Assembly (NCBI GenBank): GCA_002189035.1
Contig: NEEC01000004.1
Coordinates: 4,650,001-4,714,000 of the forward strand
Length of the DNA stretch: 64,000 nucleotides
From: Utricularia gibba
Taxonomy: Eukaryota > Plantae > Magnoliophyta
Reading direction: 5' to 3'
The position numbers and the translations under genes were made by a program. Below, one piece after another: positions 18,858-38,356 of this stretch. The notes beneath the pieces were generated by a model that did no database searches, had not been told where the DNA came from, and worked only from the letters and a program-made list of their open reading frames with translations. The number at the start of each line of letters is the position of its first letter. Position 1 is the first letter of the stretch.

Positions 18858-20882
18858 TCACACAACTGAATCCGATGAGTTGATAGCCCTTTTCCTACAA
18901 CCCCATTTTCGCTGACGAGCTCTCCGCTTCCTCTTCCCTTGTGTCTTTGCCTTAGCCTTCTCTTTCAAGCTTCTCTCCCCACGCCTTTTATACATCTTGA
19001 ACGTCACCTGTCTCTCTGCAGCCATTTCCCTGACCTTCTCTGTAATCTCAACAGCAAGCTGCCTGTTATAAAGCTTTTTCAGAGCTTTCATCAGCTTTGC
19101 AAATGTGTCCGGCTGAGGCATCAACCCAGCGTCCATCATATGCAAACAATAAATGCAAGCCTCCTTCACATGCCCTTTTGAAAAGAGAGCATGAATCCAG
19201 ATCGTCCATGCATACACATTTAGCTCGCATCCCTTGCTCGTTATGCAGCTCCAGACATCCTTGGCGAGTTGAAGCTTATCTGCTCTCAATAGTGAATTCA
19301 ACAAATCCTTCAGAAGACCGTACTGCGGCACAGCAAGCATGCCACGTTCGACCATTTCCTTGAAATAGTCACAAGCTTCGACCAAATTCCCATGCTCAAC
19401 AAGGCCATTGATCAGAATAATGAAGGTGTCAACCCCAGGGCTTATGCCATTAGCTTCCAACTCGTTCATGTACTTCATGCCATCTTCGATCTCCCCTAAT
19501 TTACATGCAAGGCGAATCATAATATTGTATATGTTGATATCAGGCATTACACCAATCTTCCGCATTTCATCAGCAAGTTCAGTGCATTCCTCCAGCCCTT
19601 CCTTCTTCTCATGAGCTAACATCAGGTGCATATAAGTGCACTGGTTAGGAAGATGCCCCTTCTGGATCATAGCATCCAGAAGCTCGTAGCCCTTTTCAAT
19701 CTTGCCCCATTTACAAAATCCGCTAATCAAGGTGGTATACGTTACAACGTCGGCGACACAGCCATGCTGGTCCATGTCAAGAAACAATGTCATTGCCTCC
19801 ACCATTTTTTCTCTAGCACAAAGGGCCTGAATCACAATAGTATATGACGTTGCATTTGGCTCACAGTGATTTCTCCTCATCTCTTGCAAAAGATGGAAAG
19901 CATCAGCAAATTTACCGGATACTGAATACCCGGTGAGTAAATTATTATACACTACAACATCAGGCTCAAAACCAGCTTCCCTCATCTTTTGCAGTAGTAC
20001 TTTTGCCTCCATTAGCTTTCCCTCTTTGCACCATCCATACAACAAGGAGGTGAAATGCTTTATTGTAGGTTTGAATCTAACATGCATATCCTCAAACAGC
20101 AAAGCAGCTTCCTTCACACTACCATTCTTGCACAATGCATCTAACAAGCAACCAAAAACATACTCATCAGGTTCGCATCCATACTTGGGCATTTCATCCA
20201 AGACTTCAATTGCCCTTTTCACCATTCTTGCCGATGCAAATCTCCTCATCAGAACAATAAACACCTCAGGTGACAGAAGCTGAGGATTCTCCTTCCTCAT
20301 CTCTTCTATAAGTGCCCAAACAGCTCCAAATTGTCTCATTTTCCCCAAAATCTTAATCATTGCTTTATAAACGTCATGACTATTCTTGTATCCAGGCTGT
20401 CTTGAAGCCCACGCATAGAATCTATATCCCAAGTTCCCAGCATCACCACATCGGTTAAGCACTCTTTCAGTCAACCCAGGCCTCACAGAAACACCGGATT
20501 GCTGCAAAGCAAGTTCCAATTTTGGGACCCTGGAACTGAACTTTTTAAGTATCCGATATATCTTCTCAACATCAGCTGAAAAATCATCGGAATCATTGAC
20601 ATCAATTCCATCAGAAATGTCCTCTGAATTTCTGATGCGGAGAAGATCAAAACCTCGTACAGGTTTACCCACGGTGTCAGATATACGAATCTTCGACACT
20701 GCTTCGTTAGAGTCCACACCAGATTCTGATGAAATTTCCGATATTCCAAGTCCCGACAGCGAGGAGAGCCGTGCCACATTTGACGGCAACCTTAAAAAGG
20801 CCATATTTCCCCTGAAAACACTAACTTGAGAATGCCCACAGTTGAACAAGTTACTGAACCTCCGCACCCTGATTCTATGCAT
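18858..20882 (-). CDS. P-class pentatricopeptide repeat protein, intronless, 674 aa, probably organelle-targeted
   Basis: Uninterrupted ORF with tandem 35-aa PPR motifs (FTSLLYGWCKEGKLMEA, YTTLISGFCKWGKIEKG) and an Arg/Ser-rich N-terminus. Confidence 0.95.
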   Translation of the reverse strand: MHRIRVRRFSNLFNCGHSQVSVFRGNMAFLRLPSNVARLSSLSGLGISEISSESGVDSNEAVSKIRISDTVGKPVRGFDLLRIRNSEDISDGIDVNDSDDFSADVEKIYRILKKFSSRVPKLELALQQSGVSVRPGLTERVLNRCGDAGNLGYRFYAWASRQPGYKNSHDVYKAMIKILGKMRQFGAVWALIEEMRKENPQLLSPEVFIVLMRRFASARMVKRAIEVLDEMPKYGCEPDEYVFGCLLDALCKNGSVKEAALLFEDMHVRFKPTIKHFTSLLYGWCKEGKLMEAKVLLQKMREAGFEPDVVVYNNLLTGYSVSGKFADAFHLLQEMRRNHCEPNATSYTIVIQALCAREKMVEAMTLFLDMDQHGCVADVVTYTTLISGFCKWGKIEKGYELLDAMIQKGHLPNQCTYMHLMLAHEKKEGLEECTELADEMRKIGVMPDINIYNIMIRLACKLGEIEDGMKYMNELEANGISPGVDTFIILINGLVEHGNLVEACDYFKEMVERGMLAVPQYGLLKDLLNSLLRADKLQLAKDVWSCITSKGCELNVYAWTIWIHALFSKGHVKEACIYCLHMMDAGLMPQPDTFAKLMKALKKLYNRQLAVEITEKVREMAAERQVTFKMYKRRGERSLKEKAKAKTQGKRKRRARQRKWGCRKRAINSSDSVV

Positions 20883-30370: not shown

Positions 30371-31132
30371 TGTTAGACTACCTCGAATCGCAGTAGTGCT
30401 GCAACGGCGGACCAGACTCTCAGGAAGAAGGGGGTGTTGGGGAAGAACCAGGAATGGAGATGTCTGCGTGGTGTTGGTGAAGGCAATTAAGGTTGGGTAG
30501 TGAGGTATAATAAATGCTTGTCGAGGAGCCTCGCTCAACCCTGGACATGGAAACTTAATTGCATGTGCCTACGGTATTTGGTATGGATTCGTATAAGTCC
30601 ACTAATGATGCTGACCAACATCCTTCCATATACGGTGGCCTCACATGGAGTCTACGCAGCAGGTACCTTGAAGCAGGCCCTAATCTGAACGCAGACGTTG
30701 ATGTGTTACCAGAATAGATCATCTCAATGGGCCTCAGGTCCAACAAAAGCCCAGCATCATCCCGTTGGAACAGGTGGCATTCCATTCCATTGGATTTAAT
30801 TAAATTCAAAATCAATCTAAAATTAATTAAATTCAAAATTTAAAAAAAAAACTTAAAATTGTATTCGGTTCGAAAAATATGAATAAAATCATATTTAAAT
30901 GTAATATTCTAATTTTTTGATGAGTAGATACAATTTTTTATTAAAGTAATTGTTGCATCTATGTTGAGATAATTTACATGTTTATTCATAATTAGACATA
31001 TTAGTTATTTTATCTTTATAAATAAAAAATAATGATAAAAAAATTATTACGCCTATGGAAAAAAATTCATTTATTTTATTTAATAATATGTATGTGCTGT
31101 GAAAAAAAGAGAATATTTTAAATCTAAAGGAG

Positions 31133-31337
31133 ATGTTTGATAGATGAGTTAACTATTTAAGTATTTATGTATTGATAACAATGTATATTTTGTAGATTAA
31201 TTTAATAGTACACGAGTATTTTACAAAATTATTGTAAAACATTTCAAAGTGAGTATTTTAAAAACCACATTCTTGTTGGATTTTGTTAAATAATTCAATT
31301 TATAATGTATTTTTTTTAAACAAATCTACCAACACAT
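31133..31337 (+). mobile_element. MITE-like dispersed repeat (Tourist/PIF-like TGTTTG end), copy 1
   Basis: Core 31219-31337 aligns to 49441-49558 at about 79% by hand count; imperfect terminal inverted repeat ATGTTTGATAGAT ... ATCTACCAACACAT. No TSD confirmed. Confidence 0.55.
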
Positions 31338-31465
31338 ATTATTATTTAAATTAAAACTAATTTGAAACATGGAATTAAAATTCAAGTTTAATTGAAATAA
31401 CAAATAATTCAATCCAAATTGAATGAATTGAACTGAAACATCTGATTTTCTTTAAAGCACACTCG

Positions 31466-31575
31466 TGGGCCTACTGCTTAAGCCCATGGTCCAATAGATT
31501 GGGCTTCCGTTCCTCTTTTAAATGCACTAGAAACCCTACCAATGTGCTGCTTCACGGATCAGACGGAACCCTAGC
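31466..31575 (+). promoter_or_regulatory. Ribosomal-protein-type promoter module: three site II elements plus telo-box
   Basis: TGGGCC 31466, AGCCCA 31481, TGGGCT 31500, AAACCCTA 31531-31538 and a second AACCCTA near 31567, directly before RPL26. Confidence 0.8.
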
Positions 31576-31593
31576 ACCAGCGGCGACGAAGAG

Positions 31594-32034
31594 ATGAAGT
31601 ACAATCCCCGAGTCACCTCTTCCCGGCGGAAGAATCGGAAGGCTCATTTCACGGCGCCGTCGAGCGTCCGCCGTGTGATTATGAGCGCGCCGCTCACCCG
31701 GGATCTCCGTACCAAGTACAATGTTAGATCGATGCCGGTGAGGAAGGACGACGAGGTGCAGGTCGTTCGGGGGACCTACAAGGGGCGTGAAGGTAAGGTT
31801 GTGCAGGTGTATCGCAAGAAGTGGGTTATCCACATCGAGCGCATCACTCGGGAGAAGGCAAATGGCTCCACCGTCAATGTCGGTATTCATCCCTCGAAGG
31901 TTGTCATCACCAAGCTCCGCCTCGACAAAGATCGTAAATCGCTCCTTGACCGCAAGGCGAAGGGACGCGCGGCAGTGGACAAGGACAAGGGTACCAAATT
32001 CACCGCTGAAGACATCATGCAGACCATCGATTAG
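31594..32034 (+). CDS. RPL26: 60S ribosomal protein L26 (uL24), intronless
   Basis: [58 protein letters not shown]; 146 aa. Confidence 0.98.
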
Positions 32035-32832
32035 TCGATTGGTTATTCGGTCAGTTGTTTTGGATTTTCATCAAGTGCCTGTTGAACACAGTGATTACGA
32101 CTCTTGTTTCCTGAACCCTTTTGAGTTGTTACTCTATCGATTGCATTTTGAATTCTTCTACTCTAAACTCGTATCATTTCCTGTTGTCAAGCACCTGCTC
32201 CTTCGTGCATTCAATATTCGCTGTGTTCATCTTCGTTTTGCTTGCCATTGAACTCGATATAATGCCACAGCTTTCTAAACTCTATGCTGATTCCGTGCGC
32301 GATCTGGGCTGTTTAGAAATAGTCTGATGGAACGAAATCCCCCCATCTGCGGTAGGGCTTTCCATTTTGCTTCCTGTTTTCGAGATTTCCCTAACGAAGT
32401 AGAGGTTTACTGGTATCATCAGAATCCTCAGACCGGGGCTAGCCTAATTTTCTGCAGCGAGTACTTAATCTTTGGATTTCGACCATTCCCGCAGCTCGCC
32501 CTGAAGAACTGTCCTGCCTTCATTGAAGTTGCCACCGTCGCGATGGTTCGAACGTCTTTTCTGCAGGGCGGTTTTTAGCATACTTTTGAACTTGTTAATA
32601 AAGGAATTGATGAAATAACGTAGGGGGGCTGGGTTGTAGTATGATCAATTTATTCATAGAAGCTTCTAGGAAGCTTCGAAAACCCTCCCAGCACGTCACG
32701 CCCATCATCAGACTTCTTCATGGTCACCGTTTCCCACTATGACATGCTCTGAAACTTCTCGTAATGGCAATGCCGCGTACTCCGGGCATAAAGAGGCTGA
32801 ACCTTGCACCGTGGAGCTTCAAGGTTGCTGCA

Positions 32833-35800
32833 ATGGAGAGTTTGCTGAGTGGCGCATGGAGGCTGTGGGGCTGCAAATGTCTTGCTGAGGAGCAAACCCA
32901 AAGACTTAAGGTCAGTTCCGATGAAACTATAGGACCGTGAAAGTTGACTCAGCCTCATTTTGTCTGTTTTTCTTGTTTCAAGATTATATGAAGCGAAACC
33001 CGCCGGTTAAAACTGTGAAAACTGAGTATAAAAGCATGTGAACTAACTAACCAGTTCTTATTGCTTTTTGTCTTCCTCTGAAAATGATATTGTGGTCGTA
33101 GAATGTAAAATGCACTCCTGTAAGTAAGTATCTTCTTCTGTTCTTTGATGATTTCAGGAGAAAGTCAGAGTTGCATACCTTGTATCCAGAGCTGCAGTTA
33201 AATTTGTACGAGGTATGATTCATCATGAGTTCCCTTCAGTCTGACGTCTTAAACTTTCTTTTCACTTTTCTTCTGATTATGTAACAAAAAATTACAGGCG
33301 GCAAAGTTGGAGGAGCTGCCTCCCGCATTAGTGCAGGCGCTTTAGCATCAATAGTCGAAGCCCGTGACATGGAAAGGCTTAATTTTCATGGAGGGGTGTA
33401 TGGTATTGGGAAAAAGCTTTCGACTGACTTCTCTAATGGCCTGTATATGGATGATGAAGCCATTAAAGAGAGACAGAAGGTTTATGGTGTCAATAAGTTT
33501 GAAGAATGTGTGGCTCGAACGTTTTGGGTGTTTGTTTGGGAATCTCTCAGTGATGCCACTCTCATGATTCTTGGCTTCTGTGCATTAATCTCCCTTATTA
33601 TCGGATTAGTGACTGAAGGATGGCCAAAGGGAGCACATGATGGACTTGGGATCATATTCAGCATCTTGCTGGTTGTGTTCGTCACTGCAACGAGTGATTA
33701 CCGCCAATCGATGCAATTCAGGGAGTTGGATAAGGAAAAGAAGAAGGTTAATGTTCAAGTAACAAGAAATGGATACAGACAGAGGATGTGTGTCTATGAT
33801 CTGTTGCCAGGAGACATTGTGCACCTTGGCGTTGGTGATCAAGTTCCAGCTGATGGTCTTTTCGTTTCTGGGTCGGGGCCAAGATCATCTCTTTCTGTTG
33901 ATGAATCTAGTTTAACCGGAGAAAGCGAGCTGGTGATGGTGAATGAAGAACACCCTTTTCTGCTTTCTGGAACGAAGGTGAAAGATGGCTGCTGCAAGAT
34001 GGTGGTTACTGCTGTTGGTATGAGGACGCAGTGGGGAAAACTAATGGCAACTCTGAGTGTAGGAGGGGAGGATGAGACGCCATTGCAGGTGAAGCTGCAT
34101 GGAGTTGCGACGGTCATCGGAAAGATTGGCCTCTGCTTCGCCGTGATCACGTTTTCTGTCATGATGAGGAGAATGGTGGTTGAGAAATGGCAGGGTGGGA
34201 CGATATTGATCTGGAGTGGAGAAGATGGTTTACGGTTGCTGGAATGCTTCGCCATCGCCGTGACCATCGTCGTCGTCGCCGTGCCGGAGGGACTGCCGTT
34301 AGCTGTGACCCTGAGCCTGGCGTTTGCAATGAAGAGGATGATGAAGGATAAAGCTCTGGTGCGGGAATTGGCGGCCTGTGAGACGATGGGATCTGCCACA
34401 ACCATCTGCAGCGACAAAACTGGAACTCTAACGACAAACCATATGTCAGTTGTGAAGTCTTGCATTGGTATGAAGGAGCTGCATCATCGGAGCAATGCCG
34501 CTTCTCCGGCGTCTGATCTTCCGCCGTCTCTGGTAAGAGTTCTGCTCCAGTCCATATTCTATAACACCAGCGGAGAAGTAGTGGTCACCGGAGATGGGAA
34601 ACATGAGATCCTGGGAACGCCAACTGAGACAGCTCTTTTGGAGTTTGGCCTTTCTCTTGGAGGTGATTTTCAGGCTGAACGGCGATCGTCCAAGGTCGTG
34701 AAAGTAGAACCGTTTAACTCGACGAAGAAGCAGATGGGAGTCGTATTGGAGCTTCCTGGAGGAGAACTGAGGGCACATACCAAAGGCGCCTCGGAGATCC
34801 TCTTAGCTGCTTGTGACAAGGTGATTGACTCCGGCGGCAGAGTCGTCCCCCTGACCGGTGATCATCGCCGGTACCTCGACGGCACTATCGAAAAATTTGC
34901 AAATCAGGCTCTTAGAACTCTCTGCCTTGCTTACAAAGAGCTTGACCAGGGATTCAGCACGGATGAGACTATCCCCTCATCAGGGTACACCTGCATTGCC
35001 ATTGTTGCCATTAAAGATCCGGTTCGCGCCGGTGTAAGAGAGGCGGTTGAACTATGCCGATCGGCCGGAGTAACTGTTCGGATGGTTACCGGAGACAATA
35101 TCAACACTGCTAAAGCCATTGCCAGGGAATGTGGGATACTCACTGAAGACGGTATCGCAATAGAAGGCCCAGCGTTCCGTGAGAAAAGCTTGAAGGAGAT
35201 GATCGAGCTGATTCCCAAGATTCAGGTAACTCACAACAGAAGGGTTCATTTAGTTCGCCATATGGTTAACTCACGATCCTCCTTTCTCCGTTCTCCCTCA
35301 GGTGATGGCTCGTTCTTCACCGCTTGACAAGCACACGCTAGTGAAGCATCTGAGAACCACATTTAACGAAGTTGTCGCCGTGACCGGCGACGGAACGAAC
35401 GATGCACCGGCGCTACACGAAGCCGACATCGGACTTGCCATGGGAATTGCAGGAACAGAGGTACTGAGAATAAGAATCCATCATCAATCCACCCCTGCAC
35501 CTTCCTTCTCTAACCTCACTATCTCTTTCATGGCTCTCAGGTCGCCAAGGAGAGCGCGGATGTGATCATCCTCGACGACAACTTCTCCACAATCGTCACC
35601 GTGGCCAGATGGGGACGCTCAGTATACATCAACATTCAAAAATTCGTTCAGTTCCAGTTGACAGTGAACATAGTTGCTCTCATGGTGAACTTCTCCTCAG
35701 CATGTTTATCTGGGAAACCTCCCCTTACCGCCGTTCAGCTCCTGTGGGTGAACATGATCATGGACACACTGGGAGCACTAGCACTCGCAACGGAACCCCC

Positions 35801-36385
35801 GAACGACAGCCAAATGAAGAAGCCTCCGGTCGGTCGGAACGGAGCATTCATCACCGGCATCATGTGGAGAAACATCTTAGGCCAATGCCTGTATCAGTTC
35901 CTCATCATAGGCCTCCTCCAAGCTTACGGGACAACCACTTTTGGACTTGAAAACCACCCTGATCCTGCCTTGCTCCTCAACACCATTCTCTTCAACACCT
36001 TCGTCTTCTGCCAGGTACTGTTACATTCCACATTCGCCATCGAATCATCAGATATAAACAGGTGACAGAAAACTGTGTTGCTGCTGTCTTTGCAGGTGTT
36101 CAATGAGGTTAACTCCAGGGACATGGAGAGGGTGAATGTGATCCAGGGATGTTTGGAAACAGAATCTTCATGGCTGTTCTTGGTGCAACAGTCTTGTTCC
36201 AGATTGTGATTGTTCAGCTTCTGGGAAGCTTTGCCAACACCACTCCACTTTCTCTTCTGCAATGGAGCCTCTGTCTGTTCCTTGGCTTCTTGGGGATGCC
36301 TGTGGCTGCTCTTTTGAAACTCATTACCCCTTTCCGAATTCCGAGGCCAGGCCCAATTTTATTTTGGCTCAATGGTTGGGCTTAG
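32833..36385 (+). CDS. ACA: Autoinhibited-type P2B Ca2+-ATPase (ACA1/2/7 clade) with a shortened first exon; alternative in-frame ATG at 32764
   Basis: Exons 32833-32910, 33158-33212, 33298-35225, 35302-35460, 35541-36014, 36096-36385; [41 protein letters not shown]. Exon 1 is inferred from MESL plus a phase-0 AAG|gtcagt donor. Confidence 0.93.
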
Positions 36386-38356
36386 TAACGGGCCCAATTT
36401 CCCAGACTGTGCTCGTGAGTTCAATCTTCGTCGGAATGCTTAGGTTTTTGATCCAGCGGACGGCTGATGTGTGTACGCAGCAGGAGGATCTGAATCGGAG
36501 GAAGATTCTGGTTTCTGTTTCAAGTTTTATAGGAGTAAATGGAACCCTGACTGGGCGAGATTTTAATATTTTTGGGATTTTGGAGACAGAGGAGGGACCG
36601 GAGGAGTTGAAAGCATTAACGTGTGGATTGCGATGTGTCTAGAAGCAGAGAGAGGATGATAAGAACGAAAGTGAGAACGTGGTGTCATGGTTTGTCCGCC
36701 TGGTCCAAGACCAAAAAAATCCACTAGTTTTTTTCTTCTGCTTCCAGACAAGCGATAGCAGTACCACTTTTGTTTATCTTTTTTTCTTTTGTTTTCGCTC
36801 TGCGCGGTAAAGCTTGAAGGCGTCTTCTGCGTTCTGGGTCTGCATGTATACATACTATCAGGGCTTCCTTTTCTTTTTGGTGGTTTTAGAGAAAAAGTAT
36901 TATAAACAAATGGATCTTTATGGAGTTTCGTGATTTATCATTTTTGTCATGATCACCCTCTTCTGTTGAGTTTCGAATTTCGATACTTCTCTGCTTTTCT
37001 TTAGTCGAGAATGTTGATTTCTGATTTGTTCCCTTGATTGGGGGAAAAAGGTATGGCTGCTATGCTGCGCCACATTCATTGAAGTAGGGGAGAAAGAGAT
37101 GGATGAGGGGAAGCCATTCGTTCTCCCATAAAAGGAATTATGCCATGGGGGAAAATTCCAAACAGAAGAAATGGGGAAGGGAATATAAAGTGAAGCTTTT
37201 GTTTATGATAAAGGGAGCAATAGTGTCAGCTTGGCGTGCTAAACACCGTGGGTGCCTGGTGTTTTTATTGCCTGGTGTTTTTATTGACTGAAGGGTCCCA
37301 TATTCCACAATGAAGATGAAAGGCAGAAAAAAGTGGAGATTTTTTTACGTGGATCCTACTTTTCGCGATCTATGTATTATTTATTTAAAGATTTTACATG
37401 CGAAAATGACGATCTTGAATCATAGTATGAAAAGCAGAGAATATGGACGGTGGAGCCAGAGGTATTGGTGGTGGGACGCTTTGTTGTAAATCTGAAGAGA
37501 TGGATGATAGTGATAAATTCTGAAACTGGGTCCTTTTACAACATTGTGTTGTGGAGGGACAGCTCTTCTTTAATGGCTTTTTTTCGCGTTTTCTGCTGGC
37601 TAATACCTTACCATGAATTTTATGGTGGGGTTCTCTTTATTTCCCATTGATTCGTGGCGAACTCCATGATCTCACACTGTGCCCTTTATCTCGCACTTTC
37701 TTGTCTTCAGTTTCTTCGTTTCTTTAATGGCGAAGACGAGCTCTTTCTAATTTTTTGTCGATGTGGGTAATGTAGTTTTTTGTTGAAAAGGTGGATTAGA
37801 TTTCTCGAACAACCTTTCTTTGGTTTTCTGCGCGTTCTTTCTTGGGGTTTCGATCTGAATCTGCTAACTCAAGAGCTTCACCATCTTTTGGTACCATTAT
37901 GTGCATCGATACGTTTCTAATCAGACGTTTTTCTCCATGGTCATGCAAGGAGAACACTTTTTATTGGCTGGAACATTGTCAGTTTGATTACCTGAAAAGA
38001 TTTTTCTGATATTTTAGAGCTTCTTTAGTCACTGAATGTTTAATGTTCTCAGTCAATTCCTCTTGTCTGTGGTTTTGGTGGTCCTCCTCTCATACCTGTA
38101 TTATGTTGGCTTTGACAGGTCTCTCCAACGTCGTTGGTTGCTGAAATATTGCCACTGAATAGCGACTGTTGGTCCTGATCTCTGAACTAAGGATCTGAAA
38201 TCTTTTACCCTTTGTTTTTCTCGATTAGCAAATCCCTCAAGAAATCACTGCGGGTAGCCTTTCAAGATCAGGCCACGTTTTCATTTATAAGAACATCTTT
38301 TCTTCTGCTTCTGCTGCTGCCGGAAAACAGCAGCTGGGAGGCAACACCTTTGAAAA

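Follow-up and report, generated by a model that had tools for sequence, protein, structure and literature searches.

An ACA2-type Ca2+ pump gene of Utricularia gibba has lost the autoinhibitory core of its first exon and keeps a putative second calmodulin-binding helix

The cytosolic Ca2+ level at which a plant ACA Ca2+-ATPase switches on is set by its N-terminal autoinhibitor. This study concerns an ACA2-type pump gene of Utricularia gibba that has lost the autoinhibitory core of its first exon; it lies in a stretch of 64,000 nt (GenBank assembly GCA_002189035.1, contig NEEC01000004.1, positions 4,650,001 to 4,714,000 of the forward strand), which is referred to as the window and to which all coordinates below belong. 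In ACA8, residues 20-35 and the first calmodulin-binding site (CaMBS1) occupy the path by which Ca2+ enters and keep the pump locked in E1, and CaMBS1 is followed by a second site (CaMBS2, residues 74-96) with I79 and F92 as anchors (bioRxiv 10.1101/2023.12.07.570580). Truncated delta40- and delta74-ACA8 both have high basal activity; in delta74-ACA8 a helix stays in place on the A domain, and calmodulin still has a partial stimulating effect (bioRxiv 10.1101/2023.12.07.570580). N-terminally deleted ACA8, ACA9, ACA10 and ACA13 are deregulated and rescue the yeast strain K616 (PMC5920303), and Ser45 of ACA2/GmACA1, beside the calmodulin site, is an inhibitory target of calcium-dependent protein kinase (CDPK) (PMC9693241). 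ACA12 is a natural deregulated isoform of the plasma membrane that still binds calmodulin (Limonta et al. 2014, as cited in PMC5920303 and PMC10132250), its deregulation being laid to two missing acidic residues in one (PMC5920303) and to a degraded calmodulin-binding domain in the other (PMC10132250). Our literature search found no paper linking Utricularia, Ca2+-ATPase and calmodulin, nor any on such a pump in this lineage.

The first exon of the Utricularia pump measures 78 nt, compared with 174 nt (58 codons) in five Lamiales orthologues, and the phase-0 donor at its end is common to all of them; the net in-frame loss is 96 nt (32 codons). ATG 32833 is the orthologous start codon, because a DNA profile of the five orthologous exon 1 sequences, searched against 31000-33400 with nhmmer, aligned there and nowhere else (32833-32858, 26 nt). 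V31, K32, N33, R36, R37, F38, R39, A42, N43 and R47 are each present in 76/76 full-length clade members, position 54 (R54) is likewise invariant in these 76 proteins, and all of these residues are gone. What has been lost comprises the segment upstream of the calmodulin sites, the CaMBS1 helix (..VVKNPKRRFRFTANL..) and the serine of an SKR motif that aligns with the CDPK site Ser45; the start codon, the exon 1 donor, exon 2 and the whole catalytic machinery have been kept. The Pfam family PF12515 (CaATP_NAI) gave no match on exon 1, with or without the possible upstream extension described below, even at E<=10, and the N-terminus of a Paulownia pump used as the positive control (P0001:1-80) scored 75 bits. 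PF12515 and an RRFRF core, the two marks of an ACA2-clade N-terminus, are thus both missing from the pump. The original prediction, made from the sequence of this locus, had described a calmodulin-binding autoinhibitory core missing from exon 1 and had called for an alignment to orthologues; the exon lengths (26 against 58 codons), the absence of PF12515 and the loss of the invariant residues bear this description out.

The missing segment was not found elsewhere in the window. A profile of the canonical 57 N-terminal residues, searched against the six-frame open reading frames (ORFs) of all 64 kb, returned nothing above noise (best E 0.83); the motif [KR][KR]F[KR][FY] is absent from the 64 kb; and tblastn with eight orthologous proteins at word size 2 detected no alternative N-terminus-like coding sequence in them. 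The earlier report of no RRFR-like sequence between the ribosomal protein gene RPL26 and exon 2 therefore extends to every frame of the window. In the best-matching Lamiales proteins the N-terminus reads MESLLS..KHSS..LQRWRDLCGVVKNPKRRFRFTANLSKR..EKLRIAVLVSKAA.., and RRFR is missing in only three of the matches longer than 900 residues; of these, one is a partial record, one is probably mis-annotated, and the third is a KRTFRY variant. One plausible alignment of the shortened exon retains MESLLSxxW, a WR-L-CG remnant and the last ~10 residues and places two deletions of ~15 and ~17 codons between them; the alignment has no statistical support. A supposed frameshifted trace of the KNPKRR codons in exon 1/intron 1 looked suggestive by eye and was dropped, having no nhmmer support. 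A separate case was met in Hevea brasiliensis, where the ACA2-type protein GH714_033187 (P0062, 911 aa) has the N-terminus MEEGVWSCEESEAKEKLRIAVLVSKAAFQF without an RRFRF core, joined directly to the exon-2 helix; this is probably an annotation artefact, and it could be a second natural case.

Exon 2 keeps 10/10 columns of its segment that are near-invariant in the clade (E59, K60, R62, A64, L66, V67, S68, A70, A71 and F74) and carries a hydrophobic pair 13 residues apart, V and F, at the positions of L61 and F74 in the clade. We infer from this that exon 2 is homologous to CaMBS2 of ACA8. Its strict conservation beside a deleted exon-1 core, in a fast-changing genome, argues that the helix would still be functional. 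Because all of the near-invariant columns are kept, exon 2 also favours a differently regulated pump over a calmodulin-independent one.

The pump gene is a P2B Ca2+-ATPase gene of six exons on the + strand, situated between RPL26 (31594-32034) and an NPH3-like gene (ATG 38358). The locus is contained in 11 public runs from four studies, and four of the runs (X2, X4, X6 and X8) were compared over 31450-37400; the evidence from runs consists of assembled contigs, not of individual reads. X2 is presumed to be an RNA run, and its spliced contigs prove its cDNA content; X4 comes from the same study. X8 is an RNA run of another study and of a slightly different genotype, and X6 is a DNA assembly of another genotype. 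The features of the gene are as follows.

32764..32832, + strand: possible 23-codon in-frame N-terminal extension (MAMPRTPGIKRLNLAPWSFKVAA); frame open from ATG 32764
32833..32910, + strand: exon 1, coding part, 26 codons, CaMBS1/autoinhibitory core gone; from translation, nhmmer and RNA contigs of X2 and X4
32911..33157, + strand: intron 1, 247 nt, GT..AG, phase 0; joint in X2 and X4
33158..33212, + strand: exon 2, putative homologue of the CaMBS2 helix, ending with one extra base (G); joints in X2 and X4
33213..33297, + strand: intron 2, 85 nt; joint in X2 and X4
33298..35225, + strand: exon 3, with the shortened linker, transmembrane segments (TM) 1-4, A domain (TGES), PEGL, DKTGT and N domain; from translation and Pfam
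35302..35460, + strand: exon 4, hinge motif; from sequence and RNA joints
35541..36014, + strand: exon 5, TM5-TM9 region including NMIMD of TM6; from translation, Pfam and RNA joints
36096..36385, + strand: exon 6, coding part with TM10 and the C-terminal tail, ending in the stop codon TAG (36383-36385); from sequence and RNA contig
36146..36148, + strand: GGG run from which the assembly omits one G; X2 (RNA), X8 (RNA) and X6 (DNA) all add a G after 36145
36323..36329, + strand: indel polymorphism; X6, and probably X8 too, has 40 extra letters between a duplicated 7-mer

The longest RNA contig, of 4093 nt from X2, follows 32796-32910, 33158-33212, 33298-35225, 35302-35460, 35541-36014 and 36096 onward, with GT..AG at every intron. 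It is identical to the window except for two single-G insertions and extends 37 nt 5' of ATG 32833. The exon 1-2-3 joints, of which the first is a phase-0 splice from the donor AAG/GTCAGT, are repeated in X4, and introns 3-5 are spliced in X8. Five introns are confirmed by RNA, and the pump gene is transcribed, as seen in two studies. The peptide strings given in the original prediction are exact in the sequence, as are its ATG 32833 and the in-frame ATG 23 codons earlier at 32764, its phase-0 splice between exons 1 and 2 is present in the X2 and X4 contigs, and the lack of expression that it had named as a possible refutation does not apply to a gene transcribed and spliced in contigs of two studies. 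With the longest RNA contig beginning at 32796, ATG 32764 falls outside the RNA coverage; the Lamiales orthologues begin at the MES.. codon and have no counterpart of the extension. An unspliced X8 contig was also observed across 32882-33115, running through intron 1. If intron 1 retention is real, a stop is reached 11 codons into the intron and the next in-frame Met is at 33369 (MERLNFHGG); the product from this Met would be without the entire regulatory N-terminus.

Protein searches were made exon by exon. Exon 3 is most similar to ACA2-type pumps of Lamiales (Paulownia, Perilla, Handroanthus and Sesamum), to which it is 73-74% identical, and the top 120 matches are all ACA2-type. In the tree the gene nests inside the Lamiales ACA2 subclade with a support of 0.96; its immediate sister, Lithospermum, is probably placed there by long-branch attraction. 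Two protein searches, one with the whole of exon 3 and one with its first 267 residues, found no orthologue of a close relative above 74%. Microsynteny with Paulownia was not detected, the adjacent genes being a porin and a cyclin gene there and RPL26 and the NPH3-like gene here. The best Paulownia matches of the pump and of the pentatricopeptide repeat (PPR) gene considered below share one chromosome, a loose linkage.

The catalytic core is complete in the translations of exons 3-5, with the DKTGT, TGES, PEGL, TGDN and GDGxNDxP (GDGTND) motifs and the N/D Ca2+ ligands of TM6 all present, and PF00690, PF00122, PF13246, PF00702 and PF00689 score above their cut-offs. The catalytic core reported as intact in the original prediction stands with respect to these motifs and domains; the assembly as given is frameshifted in exon 6, which is an assembly error treated below. 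The shortening of the linker at the start of exon 3, also reported there, holds as well: the start is ~9 residues shorter than the canonical one, no longer has the invariant Y83 and P86, and carries A in place of both G93 and E100. In the Gly-rich part of the linker (GGKVGGAAS) genotype X6 carries a 3-nt in-frame deletion (33309-33311, + strand), and the length of the linker appears to vary within the species. A four-residue insertion was observed in the A domain (33870-33899), just before TGES, where the clade reads GFSVVI; the near-invariant F278 is S here.

On balance, we consider the Utricularia pump probably to be a natural counterpart of delta74-ACA8: its basal activity would be high, calmodulin would retain some control over it, and it would not be fully unregulated. 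By analogy with the truncated pumps, an N-terminus without CaMBS1 would no longer plug the Ca2+ entry path, which would give high basal activity, and the exon-2 helix may remain able to dock on the A domain and to bind Ca2+-calmodulin, which would allow a residual, single-step stimulation. Such a pump is probably partly always-on. It would be expected to lack the CDPK brake, the aligned serine being deleted, and to respond to calmodulin at most in a single, lower-gain step through the exon-2 helix. The original prediction spoke of a deregulated or differently regulated pump, a reasonable extrapolation from truncation experiments. The absence of the CaMBS1/RRFRF core and of the serine aligned with Ser45, in a gene that is transcribed, spliced and under purifying selection, agrees with it; the putative calmodulin site in exon 2 and the frameshift of the assembly in exon 6 had been overlooked.

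Among the engineered truncations (delta40-, delta74- and delta97-ACA8, and N-deleted ACA2, ACA9, ACA10 and ACA13), delta74-ACA8 comes closest, CaMBS1 and the preceding segment being lost and CaMBS2, here a putative one, kept. The Utricularia gene differs from it in that the deletion is natural and internal, the first ~9 residues and a short non-canonical spacer are kept, and the protein belongs to another ACA clade. With its nearest normal relatives, the Arabidopsis ACA2/ACA1/2/7 clade of the endoplasmic reticulum (ER) and endomembranes and Paulownia Pfo_019352, it shares few introns, a phase-0 intron after exon 1, ahead of the EK(L/V)R helix, and the core domains and motifs, and with the Lamiales orthologues the MESLLS start. 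It departs from that clade in an exon 1 of 26 rather than 58 codons that is without PF12515, RRFRF and the Ser45-aligned serine, in the linker shortened by ~9 residues, in the four-residue insertion before TGES and, in the window genotype, in a tail that is 15 residues longer. It resembles ACA12 as a natural ACA expected to act without calmodulin activation, a kind of pump that plants tolerate and use. ACA12, however, belongs to the intronless ACA12/13 cluster, whereas the gene described here groups with ACA2-type proteins, has introns and combines a deleted CaMBS1 with a conserved putative CaMBS2. The animal PMCA pumps are likewise of the P2B subfamily and have an autoinhibitory helix that is relieved by calmodulin, but their autoinhibitor is C-terminal and modulated by splicing, whereas the N-terminal autoinhibitor is genomically deleted here.

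Several points weigh against a delta74-ACA8-like pump. The mapping of CaMBS2 onto exon 2 is tentative and relies on spacing relative to the ACA8 sequence. A transcription start upstream of 32764 would add the 23-residue extension, and the leftover WRLWGCK.. segment could still contribute to calmodulin binding. In addition, ~28 otherwise near-invariant core columns are changed in the window protein, and some of these changes could alter function; they are attributed here to the lineage-wide rate of change described below. The extension and the leftover segment also enter the most serious alternative, in which the pump is still fully autoinhibited and calmodulin-gated and a divergent N-terminus replaces the lost core. 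The substitute would be formed either by the W-R-L-W segment together with the exon-2 helix or by the extension from 32764 with its basic/hydrophobic IKRLNLAPWSFKV stretch. That the exon-2 helix is strictly conserved, that exon 1 still has a W followed by R and L, and that the reading frame is open from an ATG in good context at 32764 all fit this alternative, as does the diversity of calmodulin-binding sites, which makes them hard to recognise (PMC10132250). Yet every residue between positions 31 and 54 that is invariant in 76/76 clade members is gone, and cutting ACA8 up to residue 40 or 74 leaves a pump of high basal activity in which CaMBS2 is still present. The RNA contigs begin only at 32796, 3' of ATG 32764, and orthologues have nothing that corresponds to the putative extension, which contains prolines. 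We hold full autoinhibition to be unlikely, though not far-fetched, and prefer the partly deregulated pump.

As assembled, exon 6 shifts frame by 1 nt near 36146, and TM10 would be cut off. Each of the three runs covering this position adds a G behind 36145; the frameshift is therefore a homopolymer error of the assembly, and in the window genotype the actual ORF is uninterrupted over ~994 codons. A second G-run, at 37249, is one G short and is corrected by X2 alone; other genes of the assembly may have similar errors. The X6 assembly is colinear with the window across 31905-34342, with 34 differences in 2435 nt, and over this range its sole coding indel is the 3-nt in-frame one at 33309, with none in exon 1. 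The short exon 1 is common to at least two genotypes. The X6 allele, with its 40 extra letters at 36323-36329, has a tail of canonical length that ends in ...LKLITLKN*; the genotype of the window, X2 and X4 is without these letters and reads 15 residues further.

The gene is highly divergent. The window protein differs at 49/509 near-invariant columns, compared with a median of 2 in the other clade members, and its terminal branch, at 0.36, is 8 times as long as the median (0.044). A single-exon PPR gene at 18861-20882 (- strand), similar to At3g49730/At5g65820, was available for comparison in the same window and has ~75% identity to its Lamiales orthologues, which are 84-89% identical among themselves. 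Its terminal branch has a length of 0.44 (median 0.063). The pump and the PPR protein are each 75% identical to Paulownia, and Paulownia-Handroanthus identity is 89-90%. As an unrelated neighbouring gene shows the same long branch, the divergence is lineage-wide, a property of the genome and not a sign of decay of the pump gene; gene-specific acceleration or relaxed constraint as the main cause is ruled out by the equal branch excess of the PPR gene. Within the species, 20 coding differences listed between genotypes comprise 14 synonymous and 6 nonsynonymous changes, which gives a ratio of nonsynonymous to synonymous polymorphism (pN/pS) of ~0.13 from this partial list. The coding indels of X6 are in-frame (3 nt), and its intronic indels are of 2 and 7 nt. 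The pump gene is alive and under purifying selection. These data bear on a second alternative, that the gene is a decaying paralogue (an expressed pseudogene or an impaired pump) and that canonical paralogues elsewhere do the work. A best identity of only 74%, the changed near-invariant columns, the long branch, the exon-6 frameshift and the variation of the C-terminal tail between genotypes could all be read in this way. The frameshift is an assembly error, however, and the PPR gene is equally divergent; the ~994-codon ORF is open in two genotypes with coding indels in-frame only and a low pN/pS, the catalytic motifs are all intact, and spliced transcripts of the gene come from two studies. 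We consider decay improbable.

A third alternative is that the gene model is incomplete and that an alternative first exon with a normal autoinhibitor is used in other tissues or conditions. Few RNA runs were compared, and as contigs; X8 is without the exon 1-2 joint and has the unspliced contig through intron 1. Against an alternative exon stand ATG 32833 and its first 26 nt as the orthologous start, an X2 contig that continues 37 nt upstream of this ATG without an acceptor, and the absence of N-terminus-like coding sequence from the 64 kb, including 32 kb upstream; moreover, the expressed same-strand RPL26 ends only ~700-800 nt upstream. An alternative first exon is very improbable on this evidence. 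The chance that exon 1 is short through an assembler collapse or deletion, which the homopolymer errors at 36145 and 37249 might suggest and which the original prediction had allowed for at 32840-32880, is practically negligible, since two RNA contigs and the independent DNA of another genotype are colinear across 32796-33300 with no indel in exon 1. The reading that best accounts for the locus is still that of a pump which has lost CaMBS1 and probably keeps a CaMBS2-type helix.

Some observations concern the neighbouring genes. RPL26 (31594-32034) is intronless, lies on the same strand as the pump gene and is covered by contigs at very high depth in every RNA run; no RNA was seen in the spacer between the two genes in the depth bins 32246-32643. 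An X8 contig leads from the last exon of the pump (from 36329) to ~36845 and continues with letters that match 38120 onward, which implies an intron of ~1.27 kb (GT 36846 .. AG 38119) in the 5' untranslated region (UTR) of the NPH3-like gene. Either the first, non-coding exon of the NPH3-like gene abuts or overlaps the 3' UTR of the pump gene, or transcription reads through.

All 76 full-length ACA2-clade proteins compared keep the autoinhibitor core, and its loss in Utricularia is unusual for the clade. A natural, expressed and selected gene with CaMBS1 deleted and a putative CaMBS2 preserved would provide an evolutionary test of the two-site (bimodular) model of calmodulin regulation without engineering. 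It would also extend the short list of natural deregulated plant Ca2+ pumps beyond ACA12/13, by a route of inhibitor deletion as opposed to the loss of acidic docking residues. We mention as a speculation, itself distinctly doubtful, that this is the only ACA1/2/7-type endomembrane pump of the plant; the lineage would then lack both the CDPK brake and the high-affinity calmodulin lock on Ca2+ uptake into the ER and would rely on a pump of high basal activity under CaMBS2-only control. If this were true, the plant would offer a natural experiment that separates the two calmodulin sites and tests the model in which CaMBS2 binds first, and the loss might be connected with the unusual ion physiology of a carnivorous plant that evolves fast and has a compact genome.

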